Positions 1,463 through 61,105 of a stretch of 64,000 nucleotides of DNA are shown here, piece after piece. The notes beneath the pieces are model-generated. The model saw only the letters and a program-made list of their open reading frames with translations, ran no database searches and was not told the DNA's origin. The stretch comes from Salpingoeca rosetta (lineage: Eukaryota > Protista > Choanoflagellata): contig JAWQFM010000003.1 of the NCBI GenBank assembly GCA_033442325.1, positions 2,554,324 through 2,618,323 on the forward strand, given 5' to 3'. Within the stretch, counting starts at the first letter, position 1. The number at the start of each line of letters is the position of its first letter. The translations under genes and the position numbers were made by a program.

Positions 1463-3413
1463 ATGGCATCGGAGGACGTCAACGGGTACCGGCGCGTACG
1501 GCTGGTGGGGTCTGGGTCGTTTGGCAAGGCGTGGCTCGTGCAGCGTAAGACATCGCTCTCGCAGTATGTGATGAAGGAGATTGCGGTGCGCTTGCTGGAC
1601 GAGGGTGCACGCAAGGCAGCCGTGAACGAGGTAATGGTGCTGCAGCAGCTGCGACACCCGTACATTGTGCGATACCGCGACGCCTTTTGCCACAACGGCA
1701 TGTTGTGCATCTGCATGGAATATGCGGCAGGTGGCGATCTTTCCGCTCGCATCGCAAAGCAGCGAGCGCAGGGCTTGTTTCCGGAGGCCAAGGTGCTGGA
1801 TTACCTCACCCAGCTCACGCTCGCGCTTGCATATCTACATCGAAAGAACATTCTGCACAGAGACCTCAAAAGCCAGGTGCGGGCACACACGACAGTCTTT
1901 GGTAACTCAAAGGCACCTTTCGTTCTGTGTATGCGTGTGTATGCGTGTGTGTGTGTGTGTCTGTGTGTGTCTGTGTGTGTCTGTGTGTGTGTGTGTGTTG
2001 TGATATGACGTGGGTTTGGTTCATGCGGCCCTCTCCCCGGTTATTCTGTCACTCGTGCCTCGTGTTCATCTCGCAGAGTGACATTATGCACCGCCTCACC
2101 ACGCCTCACCACGCCTCATCGGCCCGCTTGCACACACTATGTGCCACTGGCATGTCACTCAGAACGTGTTCTTGTCAGCGAGGGACCACGTCAAGCTGGG
2201 GGACTTTGGCATCTCAAAGGTGCTGACAGACACGCAGCAGCACGCGAGCACTCTGGTTGGCACGCCGTTCTATCTCTCGCCAGAGATTTGCATGTCCATG
2301 CCGTATGGGCAGAAGAGCGACACGTGGGCGCTGGGGTGCGTGCTGTATGAGCTGCTGACACTCAAGCACGCGTTCCGTGCACACAGCATCAGCAGCCTGA
2401 TGGTGCGCATCATGGGCGGCCACTACCCGGAGCCGAGCCTGGGCTACTCCGCGGCAACGCGGCGCCTGGTCCGCCACCTCCTCGATGTCCGGCCAGACAG
2501 CCGCTGGGACACGAGCGTCCTGCTCCAGCAGCACGTGCTGCAGCCGCATGTTCTCAAATACGTCAAGGCGTGCGACATGGACCATGTTCCCCTCGGACCC
2601 CACCTGCGCGCAGCCATCGCGGAGAAGGCCGCCGCACCACACGCCCAGCTGCGCAAGGAGCAGGTACAGGTGCAGCCGGCCCAGACGCGGCGACCGGTTC
2701 GGAAGCTACCAAGGCCGGAACCGTCATTGTCACCTTCGCCGATCAAGCGCCAGGATGTGCCCGACCGGGAGCACGAACATCAGCCAGGCCAGCCAGTGCA
2801 GAGGTCGCCCCAGCATGACCACCAGCACCAGCACCAGCACCAGCAGCAGCTTGTGGAAGATGGCCGAGCAAAAGTCACCCTTCGGACACCGCACACCGAA
2901 CGACTGACGAGCTGTGAACCCGACGACGAGGAATGGGGTGTGGAGGATGAGGAGGAAGAAGAAGAGACCACAGAGGAGAGAGGGGACGTCGAGTGCGTTG
3001 AAGAGCAAGGTGCACGCCAACACCAACAACAGCAACAGCAGCAGCACCAAGGGCATGGTCATCACCACAACAAAGACGCGAGGAATGCAAGCCGGTCAAC
3101 AGCGTCTGAGCAAGAGGAGGTGGCCAAGTTCATGCTTGGGGACGCAACGCTGCATCTGCAAGGCGTGAAGAGCGACGACAGCATGTTCACGAGGCTGGAG
3201 GCGCTTCGGCAGTTCCTGGAGCTGCGGCTTGGCGAAGACCGCCTCGCTGCCGCCTACGCAGAGGTCTACGCAACGCTGATGGATGACGACGATGACGATG
3301 ATGATGATAACGACGACGGCGATAGCTTGTGCCTGTCTGATCCCGTTGTGAACGTGTATGCGCCTTTAATCGTGCAGCTGGTGTACGCCGAGCTGTCGAC
3401 CAAGCATGACTGA
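1463..3413 (+). CDS. NEK1: NIMA-related kinase, NEK1-like (exons 1463-1876 and 2163-3413; alternative in-frame ATG at 1427)
   Basis: Kinase motifs GSGSFG, VMKEI, HRDLKSQ|NVFL, DFGISKVL and VGTPFYLSPE. The C-terminal 'FTRLEALRQFLELRLGEDRL..Y...LIVQLV' matches the conserved NEK1-type tail. Confidence 0.88.
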
Positions 3414-13914: not shown

Positions 13915-14872
13915 TTATACGTGGAACTCCGTGAGCTTGATCTTCGCCTGGTCTCGCGGGTGCACTTGCGTAATGCCCTGCCAGTGGTTGCATGCCAGCC
14001 ATGAGAGAGGTGTACAGCTGTGCACGTACGCAAGCAAGCATACCCATGACGCACCGCGACGACAACAATCATCACCACCCCCGCACGGAGACACACGCAC
14101 ACACACACACGCACACACACACACACACACATGCACACACATGTGCACGCCGTATGAGACGCACAGCGCGTTGGAGCATTTCGAGGTAAGGCAGCCAGTG
14201 CTTGTCGTCATCAATGGCGATGTACGGATCGTGCGGGCTGGTCATGCACTGATTCATCAGCTCCTGCGAGGAGAGTGTGAATATGTATGTGTGCGTATGA
14301 GTGAGTGAGTGAGTGTATGCGTGCGTGCGTGAGTGAGTGAGAGAGTGCGTGCGTGAGTGTGAGTGAGTGTATGAGTGAGTGTGAGTGAGTGAGTATGTGA
14401 GTGAGTGAGCGAGTGAGTGAGTGAGTGAGTGAGTGAGTGTGAGTGAGTGAATGGGTGTGTGTGTGTGTGTGAATATTTCAATGTGATTTGCCAGACGGCA
14501 TGCTTCCAAATACCCCCCCCCCCTCACATAAACACACATGTACACATCCACCAGTACCGACCTGCAAGAGCTGCCGCAAGCTGATGAACGTGGTACCGCC
14601 GCTCGCAAGCTGCGCGTCTTCATCCTCATCCTCCTCATCATCGTCGTCGTACTGCGGGTGCCTGCCCCTCCCCCGCCTTGCACTGCCACCGCCACTTCCC
14701 CGCGTGTGTCCGCGCGTGCGATGAAAATACGACTCAATGGTCCTTGGGGCCTTTGTTCCCATCGGCCGGCCCGCCACATCGCCCGGGCGCGGCGACGGGA
14801 AGTGCTGGTCAAGGAACTCGCGCTGTGCATGCGTGTGTGTGCATGTGCGTGTGTGTGTATGTGTGTGTGTGT

Positions 14873-14907
<35 letters not shown>

Positions 14908-15665
14908 TGTGCGTGTGTGTGTGTGTGTGTGTGCATGTGCGTGTTGGGGGGAGGTGAGGCTTAAAGTGCTGTGAGCAAGCCCAACACACAGCACGCGCAC
15001 GCGCACACGCACACGCACGCACATGCTCATGGCACAAAACACAGGCGAATACGCGAAAACACACTGAAGCACACTTGCTGTCTCCTTTCCCCCTCGCCAC
15101 ACCGTCAACGCCACGCACCATCTTGATGAGGAGCTTCTGGTTCCATTTGCTGACGGCCTTTGCACGGTGTCTGATCTTGCGTGCAGCCTGCGATGCACGC
15201 TTCCTCCCATCGTCCCTGGTGTAACACATGTCAGTGTGTTGAGGGTAGATGAGGACAGTTGCACATGTTGGTGTTGCACAGGCATGTGCGTGTTGCAGCA
15301 GTTGAGTACTACAAACTGGTGCACAGATTGGAGCGCGCACACGCACACGCGTGAACCCACGCACACTCACGCGCGCAGACGCACGCACACGTACGATGAT
15401 GCCTCGGCCTCCTGGGCGTCGAGTTTTGCTCGCGTGTCCACCAATCGCTTTGTGAGGCCCTCACGTAGGGCAATGTGCTCAGCCAGACACGCTTGCTGAC
15501 TGTTATCACCAGTGCGCATGTGTGTGTGAAAGGCAAATGAAAGTTTGCAGGGCCGTGGACGTCGCATACACTTCCAAATGACGTTGCACACACACACACA
15601 CACACGCACACACGCACACACACGCACACACACGCACACACACACACACACACACACGCACACAC

Positions 15666-27422: not shown

Positions 27423-28008
27423 GAGGAAGTGGTGGAAATTGAGGCCCTCTGGGCAAACAAAAAAAAGCAAGCAAACGCAACTGTAGCAGGAAGATCAGGC
27501 TCCAACACGTCTGAGAGCGAAGGAAGAAAGAAAAGGGTCATGTCAAAACACGAACAAACAAACAAGGGTGTGATGTAAGAGATCACACGCCCCCACTACA
27601 GCACTAGAGCACTACCACAACGCAACACAACATCCAGCGGTGGGGAGAAAACGACCGGTCTATGTTTGTGATTGGCTGCGTCACAACACACAACAAACAA
27701 ACGGCAAACTCCTCAGCGAGATGCACTCCATAACTGCACAATGGCACAGCTCTATGAGCCAGCACAACATTACTGCAACAAGTTCACAAATACAGTTCGC
27801 GTAACGGAGCGGTGACACATGACAACGGCACACCGCACACGTGTGCGTACGAATGCAGTGCCACTAGCCAAAGGCAAAGTGCTGTGGTGTGAGGTGACGT
27901 GACAACAGCAAGGACTTATCAGGAGCAGATAATAAACCACCTGTGGTTGCTTGCTTGCATGCAGGCAATGCAGGCAATGCCCGTGCAGCTGCTGAGCAAT
28001 GCTCACGC

Positions 28009-31000
28009 TCACGACTGCGCTTCTGCGGTGGCGCTCAGCTTGGCGCGCTTTGAGTTCTGCTGTTCTTCGGCAGCGCCGTCTCCATCGACGACCGCCGCTC
28101 CAACGTGGTTGGCACCGCGCTCGCTGTCCTTGGTGCTGTCCTTGGTACTGTCTTTGGTGCTGTCCTTGGATTGGGTTGGGCGGCGTGCTGCTGCTGAGGG
28201 CTTTGCTGGTTGCTGAGAAGCACGTGCACGCGTCGCATCCGCGTCCGCGCCATTGCCATTGGTAGGCTGGGCGCTGCTAGCACCACGCTTGGCCATGTCA
28301 GCAGCAACGCCAGCACCGCCGTACGCGTCCCCCACAGCCTTTTGCTCGAGTGCACCGGCATCCAACGACTCGTCGCCTTCCTCGCCGTCTTCTTCCTCGT
28401 CGTCATGCTCATTGTCCGTGCTGATGTTGCCACCATCATCGTCGTCATCACCGTCATGGCTGCTGTCGCCGCCGCCGCTCTGGTTTGCCGTCGCGCCGCG
28501 CTTTGCACTTGAAGCCGTCCTGGCATTCTTCGCAGCGAGCTCCTGTAGACGAACGCGTCGCTTCTCAAGCACTGATGAACACACACACACACACAAAGGC
28601 GGTGGGGGCGAAGTAGGGTGCGGTAAGTTGTGAGTGGTGAGTGGTTAAGGCTTTAAGGGTATGTGTGGTGGTTGCGGCGACAATGATTGATGGAGAGCCG
28701 ACAAGAAAAAAAAACTGCAGGCTTAAGCGTGGTGTTGTTGGCGCTCAATGGCAGTTGCACGTGCAGTCCTTCTTCTCAGGCACAGAGAGACTCACGGCTT
28801 TCAACGACGGACACGTCATAATCCATGACAGCAAGTGTTCGACACTGCGTGCACTTGACGTCTGTGATTGGGGAGGGGAATCAGGAAGGGAGGGAATGAT
28901 GGGCAGCCAGGTTTGGTGAGTCGAAAAATAACCGACACGCGACACAACGGTGCCCCTGCACAACGGAACACGCACGCACAAACGCACAGACATAGATACA
29001 CAGACACGTACAGACAGGCAGACAGACAGACATACACAAAACACAGACAAAAAGCTGAAAGCTTACATGATGGCACCATGTGGTGGAAGTGTTCACGAGT
29101 GCATGCGTGGTTTCGTGGACAGCCGCGCGCGAGCTTTAGCAACTCTGCAACGTCAGGCAGGCGTGGCCAATGCACAAGAAGGAAGAGAAGGAAATCAACA
29201 AGGTAAGAACTGAGGAGCATGGTTGTTGCGGGCTGTGGCTGACGACGACTCTATCAGGCCAGCGTTGGGGCGCACGACTCAAGTTGCATGCAAATCCACG
29301 AGACTACTGACTTTGTTTGAACTCCTTGGGGGTCATGGTGTGCTTGCCGAGAGTGCGATACACCTTTGCAATGTCGTTGTACACGCCGCTGGAAAAAACA
29401 CGCCGAGGACATAAGTGTTAGAAACAGCACCCAGTTGAGAGCCAACCAAATTACGGCACCGTGTGAGCACTTTGCAGAACGTATCGTTCACAGTACAGGC
29501 CGTGTGGTCCAAGCATGCACGTGCATCTGTCACACAGGTCACGACGTATCATCACATCATTGCACAAAATCTACTTCTAAAACGACGCAACGCAGCTCGC
29601 AACACACACCACTCAAGCATTGACAACCACACTTGCACAACGCGCAATCACACACACACACACACACACACACAACTTTGCGCATATTTGCAGAGTGACT
29701 ACACGTCAGCATATAGGACCACCATCACTCTTTTACATACCCGTAGCATGTGGAACAGAGCCTGTTCAAGAATGTGGTCAAGGTCAACAACCGGACAACC
29801 CACCCCGGGAGAAGAGCGCTGACGTGAGTAAATGTTGTGGAATTGTTGGTTCCCAAGAAACACGATTGCAAGGAGAACACAATCAACCCCAAGCAGCACC
29901 AAGCACAAACACGAACCCATACACAGTGCGCGAAACAAGAGAACACTGTTTATTCGCGGGAGAGCAGGACCTACTTTGATGAGGTGTGCCTGCCTGGGCC
30001 TTGGCAGATTGGACACGTTGGCCGGGGCTTGCGGCCGCGTCGTCTGGTGGGTGGCACGGCACGGTAGCCAGACTGTGCGTCCATGGCAGGTGCAGACATG
30101 GGCGTGAAGCCTCCGCCAACGGACAGCTGTGACGGCATGACGGCGGCAGACACGGGGCTTTGTTGGTATGGCATGGTGGAGGGCATAGCGCCCGTTGGAA
30201 AAGCACCTGTAGAGAACGCGTGCAATGCGGCTGGTTGGTGCTGCGAAGCAAACATCCACGGCTGCATGCTCGCGGCTGGGTTGGCGGCCATGAACCAAGG
30301 GTTGCTGGTTGGCTGCTGCTGCTGTGGTTGTTGTTGCTGTTGCTGCTGCGTTGGGTCACGGCCATCCTGTGCGGTCTGCTGTCGCAGCGGCGGCATACTG
30401 TGCTGCTGAAACATCATTTGTGGTGGAAGCATCTGGGCTACCGATGATCCAGGATACGCCCTCGCTTGCTGCTGTTGCTGTCGTGCTTGCTCAGATTGCC
30501 CAGGCTCCTGCAGTTGCGCATTCTGTTGCTGCTGCTGCTGCTGCTGGAGCTGGTTCATTGCCATCTGCAACTGCATGGCATAGAGCTGCTGTTGCTGCCA
30601 GGCGGCCAGCTGTTGAGGGTCGAATCCAGAGCCACCCATGGCTGCAGGGGTGACTCTGGCCTGTGGCTCCATGCTTGAAGGCGCACCCTGATCTGGCACC
30701 AGGGGACCGGCAGGCGGCTGTGCGCGCTGCTGCTGCTGCTGCTGCAGTAATTGCTGCACCGGCGCGGACTGGAGTTGCACGGCCCGCTTCTGCACGCCTT
30801 TGGTGTTGTTGTTGTTGTTGTTGCTGCTGCTGCTTGCGTTTGCGTTTGCGTTTGCGTTGCTGCCGCCGCTGCGCTGGGTTGGTGGCCCTGCCTCGGTGTC
30901 AGCAACAGAACGGGGCATGGCAATTGCGTTCTTATCGCCCATGAAGCTGTCCGGACCGAAGGACAGCAAGTGAGGGAGAAGGCGGACAGGGGGGGGGGGG

Positions 31001-31033
31001 GAGGCTGGAAGTTAGGCGCACGGTGCTGCTGCC

Positions 31034-31064
<31 letters not shown>

Positions 31065-32300
31065 TTGTTGTTGAAGGAAATGCTTGCCTGCAAGCAAGCA
31101 AAGTGATAAACGGAAGCAAAACAACGATAGGCGAAGACATGCAATGGCGGGTATGAGTTCAAGACTTCCACCAAACAATTCGACACACAGACAGACAAGA
31201 CAGACACACACAGACAGACACGCATATTTCATACACTCAGGATGGTTCGAACGGAAAGCGCGGCACTCACTCAGAAGCTTTGGTGTAGTGCTCGGTTGGG
31301 CTTTTGGGCGGTGGTGGCACACCTACCGTATGCAAATGGCAGTGGAACCTGGCTCGACACTGGAGCAAATGAGTGCAGATGACCGACAAAGTGCAAGCAG
31401 GAGATGGGGGTGAGGGCGATGCGTGAAAGATGCTGAGGATGCTTGAAAAAGGATGTTGCTGAATTCGATGGAATGGAATCAAGACGAAAAGGGGCAAAGC
31501 AAGCCCGGTATGATGATTGGTGTGGATATAGCAAGCAAGCGAGCGAACGCTGGATGCGATTAACAGTAGCACAAGAATTAGCAAGGAAACAAAAGGTAGA
31601 GGGAGAAGAAAAGACGAAGATGAGACAAAGGGAGGGAGAGGAAGACAGAGAGAGGGGAAAAAGAAACGGAGAAGGAAAGAGGGCCTGGAAGTACAACAAC
31701 AAGGAGACAAGGAAAAAAAAAAGCAGGAAGGAATCGCGGTGTGCGCGCAGCTTGCACGCAAGCAAGCAAGACAAACGCTCAGGGATATGGGGCTCTCAGT
31801 AGTGAGCTTGCGCTTTGCACCCCGCAAACAAAACACAGGCAAAAAGGCAGCAAACAGGAGAACATGCAAGCTTACGGTGAGTGATGTGACAACAGGCTGC
31901 TGACTGAACGAACAGCTGTGCCCACTGCTGCAATTGCGTTGCCTGCAGGCACGAACAGAAATGAGAGGGAGCGGGAGAAAGAGAAACAGGCAACGAAAAT
32001 GAACAATGGTGGGTTGGGGATATGGGTTTCGTGGTCGCCAGAAAGGGAAGACGAGTGTCGAAACACATAAGTTGACAGTCCGTTGAGCAGATACAAGAGC
32101 GGCATGGAGCAGGATCGAGGATCGAAGAAGAAGAAGGAGGAGGAAGCAGCACAAGCAGCAGCTGGGTGATGCCAGGGAAACGGCGATGTTCCTGGTGGTG
32201 ACTGGGTTTGAGGTGTTTGAGTGCACTTACCGTTGCTGTGCGCAACAGGGAGTGTAGTAGGATTGACAAGCGCTTTGCTTCTTGCGAGTTGCACCTTCAT
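28009..32300 (-). CDS. Q-rich putative transcription factor with a nuclear-receptor-like double C4 zinc finger; exons 32300-32231, 31322-31271, 31087-31022, 30946-29975, 29761-29741, 29388-29312, 29144-29067, 28861-28796, 28571-28009
   Basis: All eight junctions are GT-AG with matching phases (1,2,2,2,2,1,1,1). The spliced domain reads RRRGRKPRPTCPICQGPGRHTSSKLCSTCYGGVYNDIAKVYRTLGKHTMTPKEFKQKLLKLARGCPRNHACTREHFHHMVPSYVKCTQCRTLAVMDYDVSVVESLLEKRRVRL. The three 5' exons are less certain. Confidence 0.75.
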
Positions 32301-33662
32301 GAAGTTCAGGAAGGAGACGGACAACGATCTCTCCTTGGCTGCTTGTGGTGGCACTGTGCGGGCAGCTGCGCGAGGAAGCTGTTGCTGCTGCTGCTGCGGC
32401 GGCGGCGGCGTGGGCGGCGTGGCTGGGAAGCAAACCAACACCAAAACCAAAACAATTGCCGCAGGCGGCTTTGTGTGGAGTGGGAAACAGACAAGTGGCG
32501 GTCTTGCAAGTCTGCAAGTCGGTGGGGTGAGATTTGATCTCGCAATCTCCGACGCCTTGAGGGAGAAGCGATAGGGGCAACCATGCACACGAAAACCCGG
32601 TTGGGAATCGAGGTGGCAGTTCACAACAATGAAGTTCAAGGAAATGAGAAATGAGCGCTTGTTGCGTTGCACGCCTGCAGGCAGGCGAGAGGGCGCGTTG
32701 CTTCTGCGGCGACAATGGGCGTGTTCTGCGAGCGTGCGAAAGGTGCAAGCAAGGAGCTGAGGGAGCTGGAAAACAGCCAGGGATCGTGCGTGGAGAGCAA
32801 CCCAACGGCGACACCGCAACCCGGCAACGCACAATGGATGAGAGACCGGCTGTGGATGTTGCTGCAGGTGGCGTGCCGAACAACCAAAAGGCGAGGAGAA
32901 AGCCCACGGCTAGGCCAGCAATCCGCCAAACGGCAACAAGCCAGGCTGGTTGAAGGGGTTGAGCGCTGTGTTTTGGCAAACGTCAATCACTTCGTGCGCG
33001 TGTGGGTGCGTTGTGCTTTGAGTTGCAGTTGGTGGCGTGATGTCGCAGCGCACACGCAACTTGGAATGCCCCGGGTGTGAAAATTCGAAGCACACTCGAA
33101 CAAAGCGTTCACGGCGGGCTTGATTGCTCCGCCTTGCTTGCTTGCGGCCATTTGCTTGGCGCTGCGTGGGTGACGTGGCACGGCGGGATTGCTCGTGCTG
33201 CTGCTGCCACGAATGCTGATGATGATGGCATGCAGGGGTTGGTTGGCTGGCAAATTTATTTGGTGTGTGTGTGTGTGGGGGCGACAATCAGCACCGTTGT
33301 GTTGGCGGAAGTGGTGCACTTCCTTCTGCGTGCTTGTGCGTGCTTGTGCGTGCTTGCGAAGGGTGGGACACTTAAATCTGGACGTGGACCCTTAGAGGGA
33401 CAAATAGACGAATTCGGTGCGGTCGACATGACGAAAGCTGGCCCCGTTTGACCATTTGCACATGATTATGTCGGCTATGGAACGACAACGCAACATGCGT
33501 GGGACATGCGTGGGACAGTGCGTTCGGGTGGTTGTGAAATTTTAACCTTGGGTGGCGACGCAGTCGTAGCAGCAGCTGGGGAAAATTTGAACCGAACACG
33601 AGTGATGATGAGGGCGCGAAAGTTGGCGCGGGGTTGGATACAGCGAGGTGGAGGGGAGAGAA

Positions 33663-35193: not shown

Positions 35194-38100
35194 GGCAGGC
35201 AGACAGACAGACAGACACACACACACACACACGCACGCACCAGCACAGACAAGCGCACAACATACTTGGCTGACGATAAAATGGTTCACATTAAAGTGCT
35301 CAGCCAGCTGTTCCATGGGCAAATCTGTCTCCATCGAGCCTGGTTGCGCGGCACAAGCGAAAGCAGGAAAGGGCAAAGGGAAAAGCGAACGAGGTGAAGC
35401 AGGTGAGGCAGATGCGACGTGCAAGGGAGGGGGAGGTGGTGAGCAACGCATGCGACTAAGACAAGAGTGGAGGCTCAATCCGAAACACATAGGCGATCAC
35501 AGTCAGGAACAACAACAAGAACAACAAGAACAACAAGAACAACAACAACAAGAACAAGAACAACAACTTAAACAACAACAACAACAAGAGCAAGAACAAC
35601 AACAACAACATGCTGGCCAAGTCAAACTATTCACATCAGGTGGTTCCAAGGGCGCTCACCCTCTCTCACGTACCGTCACTCCACACTTGTCCGCCCGGGT
35701 TCCACGCCACGCGACGCCCATGCCCAAACTCAGCCTTGATCTGTGATGTGAAACAGGTGAGTGGATGAGCAAGTCAAAGAGGAAGTGGGGAGACAAAGTG
35801 GAAGGTGAGAAGAGGAGACGGAAGCGAAGGTATGACACACTGCCAGCATCGCAATAACGAACAACACAAAGAATAAGAGCAACAAACAACAAACAAACAA
35901 ACAAACAAACAAACAAACCAATAAACAACCACATACACATACACGCACACACGCACACAAACCCACCTCGACGGTGTCAAAGAGGCCCATGAGAGCGCAG
36001 GAGGCGCACGCGGCGCTGGCGATGACGACATTCGGGGCAGTGAGGTGGTTGAGCAGGCGTGGCGACTCGCTCTGCATATTGCCGGTGGCACGCGTGCATG
36101 TGCATGCGTTAAAATCGTTTGGGTTGTTTGGGTGTGCCGTTGTGGTTGTGGTTGTGTTTGGTCAGTTGGTTGTGTTGTGTTGTGTTGTGTTGAAGACGAA
36201 GGGGAAGCGAGTGTCAGCGCAAATTTGTCACATGTACATGTGTGCAACGCAAGGTTGTGGAATGCGGAGCGATTAGTGCACAGCCACCACGCGCGTTGTT
36301 CCCAAGGCCCAGGTGCATGCAAGAACACGATGGTGACAGCAACTCACGGAATCGCGGGCGTTGATGGTGATGTTCAGCACACGGCCCGTTCGCTTGTACG
36401 CCTCCTGTCAAGCAGTGAAACGTGGGTGTTGGTCGTTGGCCATGGCATGCAAATTCTTGCTCTGTGGGCTTGTGACACGATGGCCAAAATTCAACCCCCC
36501 CCTCCCGGGAAACAACATTCACCCCTGTGGACCATCCCACGAGTACCGTAAGACAGGCGGGGCAATTGGGACGCCACAGTGGAACTCAGTTGTTGTCGCA
36601 CCTCAAACGTGATGTCACCGATGTTGTCATAGATGCACTTCTCCAGCACACGCACGTCCGCCATTGACCCGGTCCTGGGCAGCAGCGCATGCCGTGCAAG
36701 GGGGGGGGGGCCGGTGAGCAAGTAGGTGAGAATGTGAGCCTATTGAAGTGAGTCAAAGTGGGTAAAGGTCACGCACGTACGTTGGGAAGGAAATTGGCGG
36801 AGTGACCAAGGACAAATGCACACTCCACCCACTGCTCTGTCTTCCCCTTCGTTCCCGGTCACACCTGAAGAGGCGCCGAAGGAGCGACGCAAAGTCAACG
36901 TCTTCCCCGTCAGGCACCAGCAGATTCCTGTGCCACACACATTCAAATGTTGCCGAGTGCGTGAAGATGAGACAGGTGCGCGTGGAGTATTCCTGTATCC
37001 ACCTCACACCAAACACGTCCAATGCACATGTACACATGCATGCATGCATGCATGCATCATGCGCACGCGTACGCACACATACACAGACACAGGAACAGGC
37101 ACAGGCACATGCACACACACAGACAGACACTCACACACCCACACCCACACCCACATACACACATACAAACAGACATACACACCCACACAACCACAACTGA
37201 CCAGTTTTTGACGTCTGGAATCTCATTCTCGAAGAACTCGTCCAGCTCCTCGTCCGTGCGCGTGCAGATGAGACTGGCCATCAGAGAGCCTGCCGACGAC
37301 CCGGACAGAATGCGCGGCAACAGCCCTTCCTTATGCAACACACGCACAACACCGAGGTGGTAGATGCCAAAGCCGCCACCGCCACTCAGCAGCAGCGCAG
37401 AGCGGCCAAACGAGCTTCGCATTGCCTCAAACATCTGCAGCTTGTCCTCGTGCGAGAGGCCAGGGATGTTTGTGTCCGCGAGGTAGTTGATTTGGTACAC
37501 CACCTCGCTCACGTACTGCTCAATCAGGTCCTTCGTGCCGTGGTAGCACCGCTCAAACAGCTTTGGGTTGCCCATGTTGGCCAGGTTGCGGTGTAAGGTC
37601 GTGCGGAGCAGCCACGCCATGCGTGCGCGGTCGTCCTTCATGCGCGCCTGGTAAAACGCGTCCAGGTGGTCACGCAGCAGCATGTAGTCGTACAGCGTGC
37701 TCTCAAACCCCATCTTCCACGTCACGTTCCCCACCAGCTTGTCGAGCTGGATGGCCGTGTCCTTCCACTCGTCGTACGTGCGCGCATGTTTGAGCTGGTA
37801 TCGCAGCGTGGCCTTGAGGCTTGAGCGCTGCGACGGGCCCAGGCCACGCGTCAGCCAGTGCGCGGCAATCTGGTTGGCCACGTCGCACACGTCTGCAAAC
37901 AGCTCCACCACGCCCGTCACAATGCTTCGCGTGCCAGAGAGGGAGCCTGTCGTTACCCACGCAAAGCGCACCAGCACGGCACGCAGCACGTGCACTACCG
38001 TCCACACCGCCATCAGCAGCGCTGTCTTGAGGTGCAGCAGGCTGTCGCGCGCCCACCACGCCCCCTGTTGCCAATACCGCCGCCACCACGACGCTGTCCT

Positions 38101-39208
38101 CGCGCCAGCATCTGGTTCTGTGATGTGATCGTAAACGCGTACCCAGAATGATTCACAACAGCACGACGTGCATGCATGGACATGATGTACGAACGTGAGC
38201 ATGCAGGTACACGTGCGGCTGCGCGTGCAGATATTCAACGACAAGACAAAGGCAACAGGCACTTTGCAAGCGGTGAACACACACACACACACCAAAAGAA
38301 AGAAACCCCAACCATACTTACACACACACACATGCACGCGCATGCATGGACAAACAGACAGACAAACGGACAGATAGAGATAGGCAGAGAGAGAGATGCA
38401 GCCACACACACAAACAAACAAAAAAGCACACAAAAAAACACAGACACCACACATCACACACACACACACACACACATACATACACACCTGCGCTTGTTGC
38501 TGGTGCCTCGTCGTGTTGGGTACCGGGGAAGTGGAGATTGCGGTTGAAGCGACGGGAGCCTGCTGCGGCCCGTCTTCTGCTGTTCTTGTCCCTTGCAGTT
38601 GCATGTGGGTCGTTTGCAATGCCAGAGTCTTGGTGGTCTAATACACCGTCCTGTTGGGCCAAAGGTGACCTGATACGCTCGCGGCCAACGACACCGGTGC
38701 TGCTGGAGCGCAAGGAGAGACGAGCTGTGGCTGTTTTGTCAGCAGCACCGACACCATTGCCGCTGGTACTTACACTCGCTTCTTCTTTGCCTTCATCATC
38801 ATCTTCGTCTTCTGCAACACCATTTACACCATCAGCGTTCTTGTTGTCGGCGTTGTCGTCGTCGTCGTCGTCGTCGTCGTCGTCCTTGTCGTTGCTGATT
38901 CCTCGCACGTCGTCATCCTCTGATTCATCCGAGGTGGGTGCATGACTGTGGTCGTTGGGAATGGGGCTGCTCCTGATGCTGCTGACGCTGCTGTCATCCA
39001 GCATGGGTCTGGGTTGTCTATCGTGGTTCGTCGTGGTGTCAGCCAAGTGTTTGATGGTGCCATCGACACCATCCACGTGTCTGTCATGGTTGTGGTTGGA
39101 ACTGCCAAAGGTGGCCTTGAATCCTTTCCATACATTCGACAATGTCGCTGATTTCGGTGAACGAGAAGGGCTACTACTGCCCACAGCATCGCCACCCTCT
39201 GTCTCCAT
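34100..39208 (-). CDS. Patatin-domain triacylglycerol lipase (TGL3/4/5-SDP1 type), ~11 exons
   Basis: Motifs FGRSALLLSGGGGFGIYHLGVV, LLPRILSGSSAGS (GxSxG), GDITFEEAYKRTGRVLNI, PRLLNHLTAPNVVIASA..ASCA, WSDGSMETDLPM (DG), FNVNHFIVSQVNPH and Q.Y.GDIT. Confidence 0.93.
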
Positions 39209-50334: not shown

Positions 50335-52982
50335 ACACCCACACACACACACATTAGCAAAGCGGCCGAGCAACCACCAAAACAAACACAGCAGTGGCAG
50401 GCAGCAATACGGACCGTCCTCCATGGTGACAACGGGAGCGGATGTGGAGATGGAGAGATCTTCCTTGGGCCGCATCGGGAGATAGTGTGCGTTGGTGAGC
50501 GCATTGAGCTCGTCCTCAATCGACATCATGAGTTGCTTCACCGCCTTGTGCTGCCGCTGCACACGCCGCTCAGCAGCGCTCGTCACAGCGCCCTGCGTCG
50601 CCTCGAGGAAGTCCTAATGGGAGTTGGTGGAGGTTGTAGGAGTGGTGGTGGTGAGTGGTGGGTAGGTGGTGGTGGACGCGAGATAGCACAATGATTGTTG
50701 GGCGCATTGTAGCTGTGGTTGTGATGCTACGCAGTCCAACAAGGCATGCACACACACACACATGCACACACACACACAGTGTCAACAACAGGGGCGGACC
50801 TGTTCGTAGACTTCGGCGAGGCTGAGCTTTGACTTCTCCTTGAGTACATCCGGCAGCTGCTTCTGCTCATTCTCCTGTTGAGAGAGAAAAGAGGGGGGGG
50901 GGGAGACACACAATCGCACGCACACGTGGAGGGGTGTCAAGCGCACGTAGCAGTGGTGATGGGTGAGAAAGCAGCCAGATGTTGATGGTGGTCACAGACA
51001 CAGACACACAGACACACAGGTAAACCCAGACACACACACACACACACACACACGCATACACCCCCCCCCGCCACCACCATGGGCCGGACCAGATCCTCCT
51101 CGAAGCGGCGCTCGACGTCGTCGAAGATGTTGTCGACAATGCGCTGCTTGATCACGTCCTCAAGCTTCTCCGTCTGCTCCTCTGTCATTGGCGGCGGCGG
51201 TGCTGTCACGTGGTCATACTCGAGAAACTCCTCAAGCAGGCTGTTCTCCGGCCGCACGCGCGCATCCGCCTCTGTTTACACACACATGTGGCAGAGGGGA
51301 GATAGGAGGTGGTGAGCCAGGTTTGCATGAACGGTTGATTGGGAGGACTGCAATGGAGGCGTTGGTGTTGTGTGAAGAACCAAAAGCCACACACACACAC
51401 ACACACCCACCCACCCACCCATCCACACCCACACCCACACACACAAAAGCGCAAAACAAACCTCCGCTCATCTGCCACGTTTTCTCTGCGACATTTTCCT
51501 GCTCGAGCTCCTGAATCTGCTTCTTGATCTCGTGCTGGTGCCGCTGGAAGCTGGTCATCTTCTTAAGGTCCTCGATCGTCAACTCCTCGTCCCCAGACAT
51601 GTCGTCGTCATCGTCGGTCATGCCCTCAAACTCGTCGTCATCATCATCGTCAAGACCGAGCGCCTTTGCATCTGTGTCGCTCTCGTGCTCATCCTCGCCG
51701 GTTCCCGCCTTATCCACGTCCTCTTCGTCACCCTCATCTTCCTCCTCATCTTCAAGGGCGGCGCCTTCGTCGTCAAACCCTTCTGCATCCTCATATGCGG
51801 CCTCGTCCTCATCGCGATCCTCCTGTTCATAGAGTGTGGCCACATCGGTGCGCGCGCTCTCAAGCTGTGTCGCCTCCAACTGTGATGACAGCATGTCGAA
51901 GATGGGCTCGTTCATCAGCTCGATTTGCGCTGCAAGAAGCGACATCGCAGGTGGCAAACATCAGCAATACAACACGCACGATGAGAAGTGTGCTCAAGAT
52001 AGGCATCACGCTCACGCAAAAAGGCCCAGCGATGTTCGCAGGGAGACTGATGATTGCAAGATCTACAACACATACACGCACGCACACGTACACATGCACA
52101 AGTACCCCAAATTTGCTCCTCATCGAAGCCATGTGTCTGTGATCACAGCCAAGCGCAACACATCAAGACACAAACACAACGTGTGAGCGGTGCATGAGCT
52201 TCGGCAACGCCACGCGTGCAGGGACAGGCGGCGCCACATACCCAATGCAGCCGTGACAATCACACTCACGGCATCCACACAGCCAACACAGGGAATCGCA
52301 CCACAGAATATCTCTCACTCTCACACTGACTGACTGTCTGTCTCTTGGGCTCCTCTCCATGTCTCACACATACCCTTTGTCTCTGTCTCTCTGTCTCTGT
52401 CTCTCTCTGTCTCTGTCTCTCTGTCTCTGTCTCTGTCTGTCTCTGTCTCTGTCTCTGTCTCTGTCTCTGTCTCTCTGTCTCTGTCTCTCTGTCTCTGTCT
52501 CTCTGTCTCTCACTCACTCACTCACACACACACACTCTCTCTGGTACGCACCATGAGTTTGTGTTGGATGGATGCCTGTCTGTTGTCGACGTGCAGCTGC
52601 TTGGCTGTGAGAGAAAACGCAGATGTCAGCGACCGCAGCGTATCCGCTGCCAATCGCTCGTCTACAACCAGGGCATTGGCCACATTGGCCGCCACCTCAT
52701 CCACACCAGACAACAGCGGCTTCATCCTCCCTTTGTGCTGCTTGCGATGTGCAATGTGAGATGTGCGATGAGTGAGGAACAAAGTCGTGCTGCTGTGGCG
52801 CTGTATTGTGTGCACACGTTGTCTTGGCACGTGGTTATGTTATTGAAAGATATTGCAAAATTTCCCAACCCGCGACCGTTCACTCGCCTGCTTGCTGCAC
52901 CAGCTCCCAAAGACACTCTCGCCACTGTCTGCTGTCGCTCACCATCCTCGTCCTCAGCAACTCTCTGGTACACCTGAACCAT
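49398..52982 (-). CDS. MPHOSPH10: U3 snoRNP protein MPP10
   Basis: [17 protein letters not shown], an acidic tract, [37 protein letters not shown]....[18 protein letters not shown] and L.ALTNAHY.P; ends ...ASYKL*. Confidence 0.93.
52380..52510. repeat. (TCTCTG)n hexamer microsatellite in an MPP10 intron
   Basis: Seen directly. Confidence 0.9.
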
Positions 52983-53116
52983 CTGTGGACAGGCCACGAG
53001 TTGAAGCAGGCGCAACTTTGTGTACGACGTGTTGTGTGAGTGTGTGTGTGTGTGTGTTGTCAAGGTTTTTGTTTGGGCACAAGCGATCAGCCTTCACTCA
53101 TCGACAAGCAAGCAAG

Positions 53117-55260
53117 ATGGCCTTCAAGTTTGGTGGCGGACAGCAGCCTCCGCAGCAGCAGCAACAGCAGCAGGCCATGCCTGCATTTGGGGCTGGACAA
53201 AAACCAGGAGGTGCGCCTGCTTTTGGCGGCGGCGGTACTGGCGGCGGCGGGTTGAAGTTTGGTGCCCCAAAAGCCGGTAATGTGGCCACACCCTCCCCTC
53301 TGTCAAAGCCTGCCACAACCGCACAACCACAACAAGGCTTCGCCTTTGGCAGCAAACCTGCACAGCCAGGCACAGGTGCACCCGCATTCGGTGCTCCACA
53401 GGCAGCGACGACAGGTGCACCCGCATTCGGTGCTCCCAAGACTGCCACTACCACTGCACCAGCGTTTGGTGCTCCCAAGACTGCCACGACCACTGCACCG
53501 GCATTTGGTGCTCCCAAGACTGCCACGACCACTGCACCGGCATTTGGTGCTCCCAAGACTGCCACTACCACTGCACCGGCGTTTGGTGCTCCCAAGACTG
53601 CCACTACCACTGCACCGGCATTTGGTGCTCCCAAGACTGCCACTACCACTGCACCGGCGTTTGGTGCTCCCAAGACTTCCACAACAACAGCAGGCGCACC
53701 CGCGTTTGGTGCTCCCAAGACTGCCACAACAACTGCACCCGCGTTTGGTGCTCCAAAGACAGCCACGACAACAGCAGATGCGGGGACAAAGTCTACTGCG
53801 CCCGCCTTTGGAGCACCAAAGACACAAGCGAGCGGCCCGGCAAGTGGTTCGTCCTCATCCACAGCTGCTGCACCCGCCAAGCCCGCCTTTGGTGCACCCA
53901 CTGCGCAAAGTGCCAAGCAGCCACCAAATGGATCAAACGCAGACCCAAACAACATGCTCTACAAGGAGCTCGACAAGGCCCTCGGCAAGGTGTGCATGTC
54001 TGTGTGTACAATTGCGTGTGGAATTGTGTGTGTGTGTGTGTGTGTGTGGGTGTGGGTGTGGGTGTGTGTGTGTGTGTGGGTGTGGGTGTGGGTGTGGGTG
54101 TGGGTGTGGGTGGGTGTGTGTCTGTGTCTGTGTCTGTGTGTGTGTCTGTGCCTGCGTTCGGTGGCCCTACGTCACTCAATTCACTGTTGTCACCACAATC
54201 ACTCATGCGCCTCCGCCCATCACGTGTCGCACCAAACGCGCCTTTCCTCTCCCGCCCCCCCCCCCGTCTGCTTTCTGCACCCAACAGTGGCAGAAGGAGA
54301 TTACAGACCAGCATGCGGCGTTCACGGAGGAGGTGACGCAGCTGCGGAAGCGCGATGGCGAGATCCTGGCCAACGCCAACCGCATCAAGTCGCTCAACGA
54401 CGAGGTGGCACACGTCGAGAAGCAGCAAAAGAAGTACGTAGCACACGGTGGTGGAGCGTGGTGGTGGCGTGGTGGCGTGGTGGTGTGATGTGTGGTGGTG
54501 TGGCATTGATGCGGGTTCGGTGGTGGTTCGTGTTGAGGGACACGGGATGCTTGACTCATTCAACCACTGCATCTACAACGACAACTGCTGGTGGTGGTGG
54601 TGGTGGTGCTGCTGCTGCTGCTGCTGCTGCTTTTTTGTTGCTCGTTGTCGTTTGTTGCATCAGGTTGAAGGGCGAACTGGAGACGCTGACGAAGGAGCAG
54701 GAGGACATCAACGGTGGGGACCAATCTTGTTGTGTGATGGCTGTGTTGGGTTGGTTTGTGTCCAAACCGATCACACAACACGCTGCTGCGGCATTCGTAT
54801 TGGGTTGGTGCAGTACACAACTGCCAGTGTACCCACACAACATACAACATACAACACACATTCATATTCATTCACACGCACGCATACAATGGCGTATGTG
54901 CATCCCGTATCTGCTTAAGGCATTCTGGATGAGCTTGAGAAGAGTGTGCAAGGCATGGACGTGTCGGGTACCGCAGACCACGAACGCCACCGCATGTACG
55001 CCTGCATTGTATTGTATTGTGTGTGTGTGTGTGTTTGAGCATGGCTGCTGTCCCTTTTCTTCTATTGTTCGATTTGCACATGTGATTTGCGCGCCAACGA
55101 CCAGCGGTACTGACGACGACGACCACCACCACCATGATGATGTGGTCACGCATGTGTGCGCAGGGCGGCGACGGCGATGCAGGTGCACGAGACCATGTCC
55201 AAGATGCAGGACGAGCTCATCAAGCTCACAACAGAGGTCAACCAAGGTGCGGACACACAC

Positions 55261-55328
<68 letters not shown>

Positions 55329-55695
55329 CACACGAGCTGACACTGCTGGGTGTTTTGGTGCACAGGAGCGCACGGGGACGAGGACGACCCGATGCGGCTG
55401 ATCACAGAGACGCTACACAACCATCTCGCCACACTCACAAACGTCGAGCGCAACATTGGTGAGCCCGCCACTGCTGCTACTGCTGCTGCTGCTGCTGCTG
55501 CTGTTGTTGTTGCCGTTGGCGTTGACTGTTTTGTCATGCTTTTGCGCAGTATCACACGCGCACACACAATCACCTGCAACGCGTTTCTCACACGTGTCAT
55601 GTGCACATGCCACGCCTTGGTGTGTGTGTGTGTGTTCACCAGACGAGCTGCAGAACAGGGTGCAGCATGTAGAGAACATTCGCGGCGGGCACTAA
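53117..55695 (+). CDS. NUP62: FG-nucleoporin Nup62/Nsp1
   Basis: N-terminal FG repeats, then the Nsp1-type coiled coil YKELDKAL.KW..E...Q...F........RD..I..N...I..L...V..VE..Q..L..EL....EQ, then DPM..I...L.NHL..L. Confidence 0.9.
53418..53770 (+). repeat. Coding 39-bp tandem repeat (APAFGAPKTATTT, about 9 copies) in NUP62
   Basis: Unit gcaccggcatttggtgctcccaagactgccacgaccact, with mostly synonymous variation between copies. Confidence 0.95.
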
Positions 55696-59715: not shown

Positions 59716-60021
59716 TCAGCGTGACGACGCCGTCAGGGTGGCGAGGGGAACACCACGCACGTCGCTGGCGGTGCGAAGCGCCGTTTCAAAGCCCAGACAC
59801 GTCGACACGGGGATGCCTTTCCCCTTTGGAATGCTGTCCCGCCCATACAGGCCCTTGCCCGCACCCTGCTCATCAAAGCGGTGCTTGTGCGAGCCCGTGT
59901 ACAGTCGAGGGTCCGTCAACCGCCGGAACAGCGGCGGCAGCTCGTCGTCGTAGTCCGAGACAACCGTCGTGCGCGGGGCGGACGCGGTGGATGGCGCTGT
60001 GGATGGGCGGCGGCTGCGACG

Positions 60022-60052
<31 letters not shown>

Positions 60053-60681
60053 TGGCGCTTCTTCGTCTTCTGTTTCATCTCTGGCGACGACGACGACGAG
60101 GATGAGGAGGGTGAGGAGGGCGACAACGACTGCGCAAAGGACGCGACGCGCTGCACGACATCACACGTGCAGTTTGGGCGCTCGTTCAGGGCAGCGAGCG
60201 CGTTTGCAAACTGCTTGAAGGTGAGTGCGTTGTGCGAGTTCTTGAACTTGCTGAAGGCGATGTCGCAGTCAATGCGGGACAGGCCTGTCCGTTTGAGCAC
60301 CTTGGCATCGCGGCACGCCTTGATGAAGTGCCAGCCGGTCATGTGGCGGCGCACGCGCTTCCGCTGGGGCGCGTCGCCGCTGGTTGTGCTGCTGCACGGA
60401 ATGGCCTTGGAGTACGCCATGAACACAGCGCGCAACGAATCACGCTGCTCGTTCGCCGCATCCTCGTCCATCATCGCCGGTGGCGGCGGTGGCAGGTCAG
60501 ACGCTTGCATATCGTCGGTGGTGTTGTCGGTGTTGTCGTCGCAGTTGTTGGTGCTGTTGTCGTCGTCGTCGTCGTAGTCGATGTTGTTGTTGTTGTCGGC
60601 GTGGTCGTTGTAGTTGATGTGTTGTTCTGGCGGTGGTGGAGGGGTTGGAGGTGGTGGCGGTGGCGGGAGAATGTCGTCCAT
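59716..60681 (-). CDS. TPPP-like: TPPP/p25-alpha domain protein, single exon
   Basis: M.G.HFIKACRDAKV......IDCDIAFSK.K.....LTF.QF..AL..L and RLTD...YTGSHKHRFD..G.GKG..GRD. The ATG at 60681 is preferred over the ORF-track start at 60948. Confidence 0.88.
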
Positions 60682-61105
60682 TTCGAACAGGTGTTTGGCT
60701 GGTTGGCTTTCGCCTTGATTACTTCTTCGTGTTGTTGTTCCCCTTGTAGTTCTTCGTATCGCGTGTGGTTGCCCCGGAAGCTGTGTGGGTACGCACGTTG
60801 CCTGTCGCTCGGGGTTGTTGCCTATCGGCCGCCTGTGGTTGTGTTTGTTCGTATGGGATGAGGGGGGGGAGGCGAAGACGGGGAGACGAAGTATCCTTGC
60901 TTCAGTTTTTCTTCGAACCAGGGGGGAGGAGATGTAAAATGGCACCAAGAGAGGTCGATGACTGTGTTGTCATCAGGAATAGCAGCAACAAGCGTGGTTG
61001 CTGTGCCTTTGCTGTGTCATCACCTTTGGCGTGGTGTCACATCATCGCTTGGCTTGCATCGCGCAAGGCGTGGTGATGCTTGCTTGCTTGCTGTCCTTCT
61101 TGCAG

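Follow-up and report, generated by a model that had tools for sequence, protein, structure and literature searches.

An expressed double-C4 zinc-module gene of Salpingoeca rosetta and its comparison with the nuclear-receptor DNA-binding domain

Introduction

Gene regulation in animals is marked by the nuclear receptors, which combine two domains. If a zinc domain of the receptor type worked alone in the nearest living relatives of animals, it would reveal the role of the DNA-binding half before ligand control. Whether such a domain is encoded there is the question raised by a gene on the minus strand of a 64,000-nt stretch of the choanoflagellate Salpingoeca rosetta (assembly GCA_033442325.1, contig JAWQFM010000003.1, positions 2,554,324 to 2,618,323; the whole of this stretch is called the window, and positions are those of the window). 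The spliced product of this gene carries eight cysteines in two C4 groups, and an earlier note, made from the letters alone, had proposed that they form a proto-receptor DNA-binding domain or represent a new C4-C4 class of transcription factors relevant to the origin of nuclear receptors.

As described below, the protein is probably a nuclear, DNA-binding transcription regulator with a lineage-specific double-C4 zinc module, to judge from its sequence. The module is not a demonstrable member of the family of nuclear-receptor DNA-binding domains, although it may still function in the same way. Outside animals, a domain of the receptor type would not be a first, because choanoflagellate proteins with a zf-C4 domain and without a ligand-binding domain were published in 2019, and the domain was concluded to predate animals (Lopez-Escardo et al., 2019; PMC6792448). 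A later paper restates this report of zf-C4-only choanoflagellate proteins (Beinsteiner et al., 2021; PMC8092661). The premise of the earlier note that nuclear receptors are an animal innovation needs updating in this respect.

Gene structure and transcription

The gene contains six coding exons, which are joined at canonical GT-AG sites; the coding part of the first spans 30942-29975, and the five that follow are listed in Table 1. Splicing generates an open frame of 1773 nt (CDS 30942-28009), corresponding to a protein of 590 amino acids. In the first of these exons, an in-frame TAA (31014-31012) lies ahead of the start codon (30942-30940), and the product comprises a region rich in Gln, Pro, Met and Ala, the basic motif RRRGRKPR (30022-30045) and the first cysteine pair, CPIC (30004-30015). 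The last exon encodes the basic stretch LLEKRRVRLQELAAKNA (28522-28571), which is followed by a tail rich in Asp, Glu, Ala and Gly that contains a KDST repeat and, close to its C-terminus, SKRAKL. Because RNA contigs reach down to 27900, the 3′ untranslated region extends below that position.

The RNA evidence consists of reads and contigs mapped to 4501 letters of the window, the contigs being derived from two studies (runs X4 and X8). One X4 contig (contig 1, 2270 nt) aligns to 27900-28570, 28796-28861, 29067-29144, 29312-29388 and 29974-30793; ahead of the last of these pieces, 20 of its letters are unplaced. A contig of the other study (X8 contig 5) likewise has 20 unplaced letters between 29388 and 29974. 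Four AG-N21-GT candidates for a microexon are present in the intron concerned, of which 29761-29741 alone fits both the covered bins and the open frame. The X4 depth in the bin 29712-29862 is 21, the value that 21 nt covered at the contig depth of 158 give when averaged across the 151 nt of the bin. The adjoining bin 29863-30013 includes 40 letters of the first coding exon (29974-30013), which explain its depth of 41.9. A microexon of 21 nt is also required by the length of the product called by NCBI (590 amino acids), and it is present in all RNA contigs examined. In the raw stranded RNA reads, the depth of which is low, the first mate falls mainly on the plus strand, as expected for minus-strand RNA. 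The gene is transcribed, and every coding junction is confirmed by spliced RNA contigs of the two studies.

The microexon, with a length divisible by three, carries Cys 3 and Cys 4, such that skipping it would keep the frame and lose the first zinc site. In the same region, (TG)n runs occur on the coding strand within the intron after the microexon (29655-29683) and directly upstream of the acceptor of the last intron (28572-28595).

An NCBI gene call with a 590-amino-acid product and no Pfam domain on record exists in the assembly GCA_000188695.1 (scaffold GL832982.1), and its 2934 nt are identical to 30942-28009 of the window. The DNA is that of a choanoflagellate, in agreement with the non-animal genome supposed in the earlier note. 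The gene is publicly annotated yet unnamed, and the description "hidden" refers only to its invisibility in the track of open reading frames (ORFs), in which the domain, being split over five exons that include the microexon, could not be seen.

The eight-cysteine module

The eight cysteines of the module are all the cysteines of the 590-amino-acid protein. They form four pairs within 79 residues (aa 310-388), spread over five exons, and a regular-expression match gives their spacing as C-x2-C-x11-C-x2-C-x35-C-x5-C-x14-C-x2-C, followed by R. The chance that eight random positions would all fall within 79 of 590 residues is about 5e-6. Since pairs 2 and 3 are separated by 35 residues, most of them other than glycine, two sequential Cys4 sites fit better than an interleaved one. 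The basic motif RRRGRKPR (aa 300-307) stands ahead of the first Cys, and the 125 residues around the cysteine cluster (aa 296-420) have a net charge of +17. The zinc module is flanked by long low-complexity regions; Gln accounts for 22% of the N-terminal 295 residues, and the last 170 residues have a net charge of -16.

Much of what had been read from the letters stands in the spliced protein. The proposed cysteine spacing is reproduced exactly, the basic motif follows the Gln-rich region of about 300 residues that had been placed ahead of the module, and the basic stretch and the acidic tail are found behind it, so that the overall layout, from the Gln-rich region through basic arm and zinc module to the acidic tail, looks like that of a transcription factor. 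The start of the protein has to be moved from ATG 32300, where the note had put it, to 30942, for reasons given below with the leader.

An HNH-like reading of the HFHHMVP loop, which is encoded by the exon of the third pair, was considered and rejected, as the loop is without Asn and without the usual spacing and has no Pfam match.

Comparison with known zinc-finger families

The spliced domain of 121 amino acids was compared with Pfam-A by hmmscan and with all PDB chain sequences by a profile search, both at E<=10. In Pfam-A, DZR_2, DnaJ_CXXCXGXG and RecR_ZnF alone were returned, all under their cut-offs, and the best of them, the double zinc ribbon (DZR_2; E=0.009, 16.3 bits vs a cut-off of 27), covers finger 1 alone. 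At this threshold the domain has no match in Pfam-A to zf-C4 (PF00105), GATA, LIM, A20, FCS, MYM, RING, PHD, MYND or ZZ. None of the solved receptor chains among the PDB sequences matches it, and the sole match there is an unrelated CCCH protein (E=1). When each exon piece was searched alone, including the N-terminal 322 and the C-terminal 186 amino acids, Pfam returned nothing at E<=5; because no exon has a match, a ligand-binding domain (Hormone_recep, PF00104) is absent, as had been stated earlier.

The canonical DNA-binding domain of nuclear receptors has the spacing C-x2-C-x13-C-x2-C-x15-17-C-x5-C-x9-C-x2-C, together with CEGCKGFF[KR]R, a ninth Cys and KC..GM. The module resembles it in having eight cysteines in two C4 groups, with C-x2-C, C-x2-C, C-x5-C and C-x2-C-R in the same order, in the expected onset of helices at pairs 2 and 4, in the Gly two residues after Cys 4 and in being basic overall. 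In contrast, the loops of the module have 11, 35 and 14 residues, as against 13, 15-17 and 9 in receptors, so that three of the seven spacers differ and the four within-pair spacings agree. The module is without FFRR, the ninth Cys and KC..GM, the places of which are taken by CSTCYGGVYND and CTQCRTLAVMDY, and it has no profile or pairwise sequence match to the receptor domain. Its protein further differs from receptors in having no ligand-binding domain and in carrying a basic arm before the zinc domain, where a receptor has only a C-terminal extension. When the module was compared without gaps, anchored at the cysteines, against a single receptor domain (human RXR alpha), the score was only weakly above that of shuffles, -15 vs a shuffled mean of -43 +/- 14 (P=0.03); as the blocks were freely chosen, this value is not significant and serves as a lead only. 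The kinship with the receptor domain that the earlier note had proposed was put to these sequence tests, and they did not place the module in the receptor family.

Other families of zinc fingers resemble parts of the module. GATA fingers have the spacing C-x2-C-x17-18-C-x2-C and LIM domains the spacing C-x2-C-x16-23-H-x2-C-x2-C-x2-C-x16-21-C-x2-C/H/D; neither fits the module, in keeping with the missing profile matches. Treble-clef fingers of the A20 and FCS/MYM types share with finger 1 the spacing C-x2-C-x11-C-x2-C and, at the second pair, a hydrophobic residue followed by C-S-x-C and an aromatic residue. They differ in that each is a lone finger with ubiquitin, protein or RNA as its ligand, whereas the module has a second C4 site, and their Pfam models do not match it; that of the A20 finger (PF01754), the spacing of which (C-x2-4-C-x11-C-x2-C) fits finger 1, is short and has little power. 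The zf-C4-only proteins of choanoflagellates (PMC6792448) come from the same group of organisms and have, like the present protein, a zinc domain without a ligand-binding domain. Unlike the module, they were found through a Pfam zf-C4 match.

Nature of the protein

With the basic arm, the basic stretch, the Gln-rich N-terminus and the acidic tail taken together, a DNA-binding transcription regulator is the most economical reading of the protein, and the lack of a match to any known family in the module region is counted for a lineage-specific double-C4 module. Pairs 1 and 2 would bind one zinc ion and pairs 3 and 4 a second, one site after the other. Each site would be built from a knuckle, then a loop, then a CxxC at the start of a helix, as in the general treble-clef arrangement common to receptor, GATA and A20 fingers. 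Nucleic acid may be held with the help of the basic arm before the module and the basic stretch after it, and the Gln-rich N-terminus and the acidic tail could recruit other factors. Several points weigh against this reading. An exhaustive HMMER search with exon 1 (322 amino acids) among 1.84 billion representatives gave no homologue (0 matches); the arm RRRGRKPR has no match to the Pfam AT-hook model; finger 1, taken alone, has the spacing of the A20 type, and A20-type fingers bind ubiquitin rather than DNA. It also counts on this side that we infer zinc binding, nuclear location and DNA binding of the protein from its sequence.

It is possible, although doubtful, that the module is a true and very divergent homologue of the receptor DNA-binding domain, in which the helices of two treble-clef fingers would pack into a single globule and a further helix would be inserted between the two, in a choanoflagellate family predating fusion with the ligand-binding domain. 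In its favour are the arrangement of the eight cysteines in two C4 groups, the second with the unusual C-x5-C knuckle and C-x2-C-R, and the Gly two residues after Cys 4 with the aliphatic/aromatic pair behind it, which recalls CKGFF; the anchored block score lies above the shuffled mean, and zf-C4 without a ligand-binding domain has a published precedent in choanoflagellates (PMC6792448). The silence of PF00105 and of all solved receptor chains at E<=10 argues against homology, as do the three spacers that are off the canonical lengths and the missing FFRR, ninth Cys and KC..GM, and the anchored score is not significant, as stated above.

A less probable alternative is that the zinc module sits in a low-complexity scaffold protein and binds protein, ubiquitin or RNA, and not DNA, in the manner of A20-type, FCS/MYM-type or zinc-ribbon fingers. 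Finger 1 with its LCSTCY does resemble A20-type and FCS fingers, the sole Pfam match of note is the sub-threshold double zinc ribbon, and condensate or scaffold proteins typically contain long regions of low complexity. However, zf-A20, zf-FCS and MYM give no match at E<=10, and the charge of +17, with the basic arm ahead and the basic stretch behind, resembles that of nucleic-acid binders. The four pairs also provide the ligand count of a single interleaved (cross-brace) domain of the RING, PHD, MYND or ZZ kind. Pairs 2 and 3 are only 1-6 residues apart in cross-brace domains, as against 35 in the module, and the RING, PHD, MYND and ZZ models return no match at E<=10, which makes such a domain very improbable. 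A DNA-binding regulator with two sequential zinc sites is the preferred reading.

As a tentative proposal, the module might be a pre-animal relative of the receptor DNA-binding domain whose fingers are separated by an extra helix, and it might belong to an expanded family in S. rosetta. S. rosetta can be transfected and edited. If the proposal is true, the role of the domain before it joined the ligand-binding domain becomes testable in this genetically tractable organism. The locus does not yet carry weight for the origin of receptors, cysteine spacing being the sole link to them. What it offers is a cleanly defined, expressed and uncharacterised double-C4 protein without family assignment, together with an exact gene model.

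The 5′ leader, relatives and genomic setting

The protein start at ATG 32300 was rejected, for when this ATG is spliced through the RNA-supported exons the frame meets a stop after 57 codons. Together with the in-frame TAA ahead of ATG 30942, this stop indicates that 30943-32300 is a spliced non-coding leader for the 590-amino-acid protein. The leader (window 30943-32996) has a length of about 1 kb or more, on the assumption that the 596 contig letters beyond 32400 are contiguous DNA, and contains three introns. It also holds two upstream ORFs, one of 92 codons and one of 57 codons, the latter opening at ATG 32300. A single X4 contig (record 3) joins the three leader exons listed in Table 1 and runs on downstream of them. 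The acceptor of the exon with the start codon probably lies at 31087, as judged from the AG at 31089-31088 and 42 further letters of X4 record 3.

Table 1. Exons of the zinc-module gene and other features of the window
Feature	Position	Strand	Evidence or assignment
5′ leader exon; transcript runs on upstream of 32400	32231..32400	-	X4 record 3 on 32230-32400
5′ leader exon, 67 nt	31876..31942	-	AG/GT borders; fits 66 unplaced letters and one ambiguous letter of X4 record 3
5′ leader exon, 89 nt	31271..31359	-	X4 record 3 on 31270-31359; AG/GT borders
Exon with end of leader and codons 1-322	29975..31087	-	Sequence; RNA contigs on 29974-30793; NCBI CDS has same ATG
21-nt microexon, (K)LCSTCYG: second Cys pair and start of presumed helix after finger 1	29741..29761	-	AG/GT borders, open frame, RNA
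Exon for GVYNDIAKVYRTLGKHTMTPKEFKQ, bulk of 35-residue spacer between zinc sites	29312..29388	-	Sequence; RNA contig pieces 29312-29388
Exon for third Cys pair CPRNHAC (C-x5-C) and His-rich loop TREHFHHMVPS	29067..29144	-	Sequence; RNA contig piece 29067-29144
Exon for fourth Cys pair CTQCR and next residues	28796..28861	-	Sequence; RNA contig piece 28796-28861
Last coding exon, stop TGA 28011-28009	28009..28571	-	Sequence; RNA contigs on 27900-28570
Protein kinase	2139-3410		Pfam on long exon
CENP-K	14075-15388		Pfam on long exon
DUF3336 and patatin lipase	37060-38619	-	Pfam on long exon; 99% identical to PTSG_09434 of Salpingoeca rosetta
FG-nucleoporin-like protein	52853-55459		Pfam on long exon
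p25-alpha protein	59719-60948		Pfam on long exon

Relatives of the protein were also sought with the stop-free stretch of exon 1 (346 amino acids), and a word search gave no match for region 250-346 at E<=0.01 or for region 296-346 at E<=10. The exon-1 queries did not return the 590-amino-acid protein itself from either collection, though these do contain the neighbouring PTSG_09434; the collections may have been filtered for low complexity. Six ORFs of the window that start with ATG were looked up exactly in the protein collection, and none of them is in it. Around the orthologous patatin lipase of Monosiga brevicollis, the locus has entirely different neighbours, with no synteny and no copy of the eight-Cys domain, and no copy was found in a Logan contig of another relative. 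The literature yielded no paper on the zinc-module gene or on an eight-Cys family of this kind in S. rosetta, no relevant one through the locus tags next to PTSG_09434 and no AlphaFold-based report of receptor-like domains in choanoflagellates. Besides the neighbours listed in Table 1, the NCBI calls at the GL832982.1 locus include NAC/UBA_HYPK, DUF5054 and a GHMP kinase.

Some of the RNA signal over the gene appears to be foreign to it. The CAG/CTG tracts at 30312-30349, 30724-30746 and 32378-32400 have very high read and contig depth. They also show seeming substitutions (30326 G>T, 30337 C>T) and joints that are impossible (e.g. "goes back 2086"); these anomalies look like cross-mapping from other polyglutamine transcripts rather than features of the zinc-module gene. 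A GT/GTCT-rich stretch in a leader intron (31183-31216) reaches an RNA contig depth of up to about 12,800 (X8 bin) and shows a one-letter deletion at 31197 in most records, which points to transcription of a dispersed repeat at other sites.

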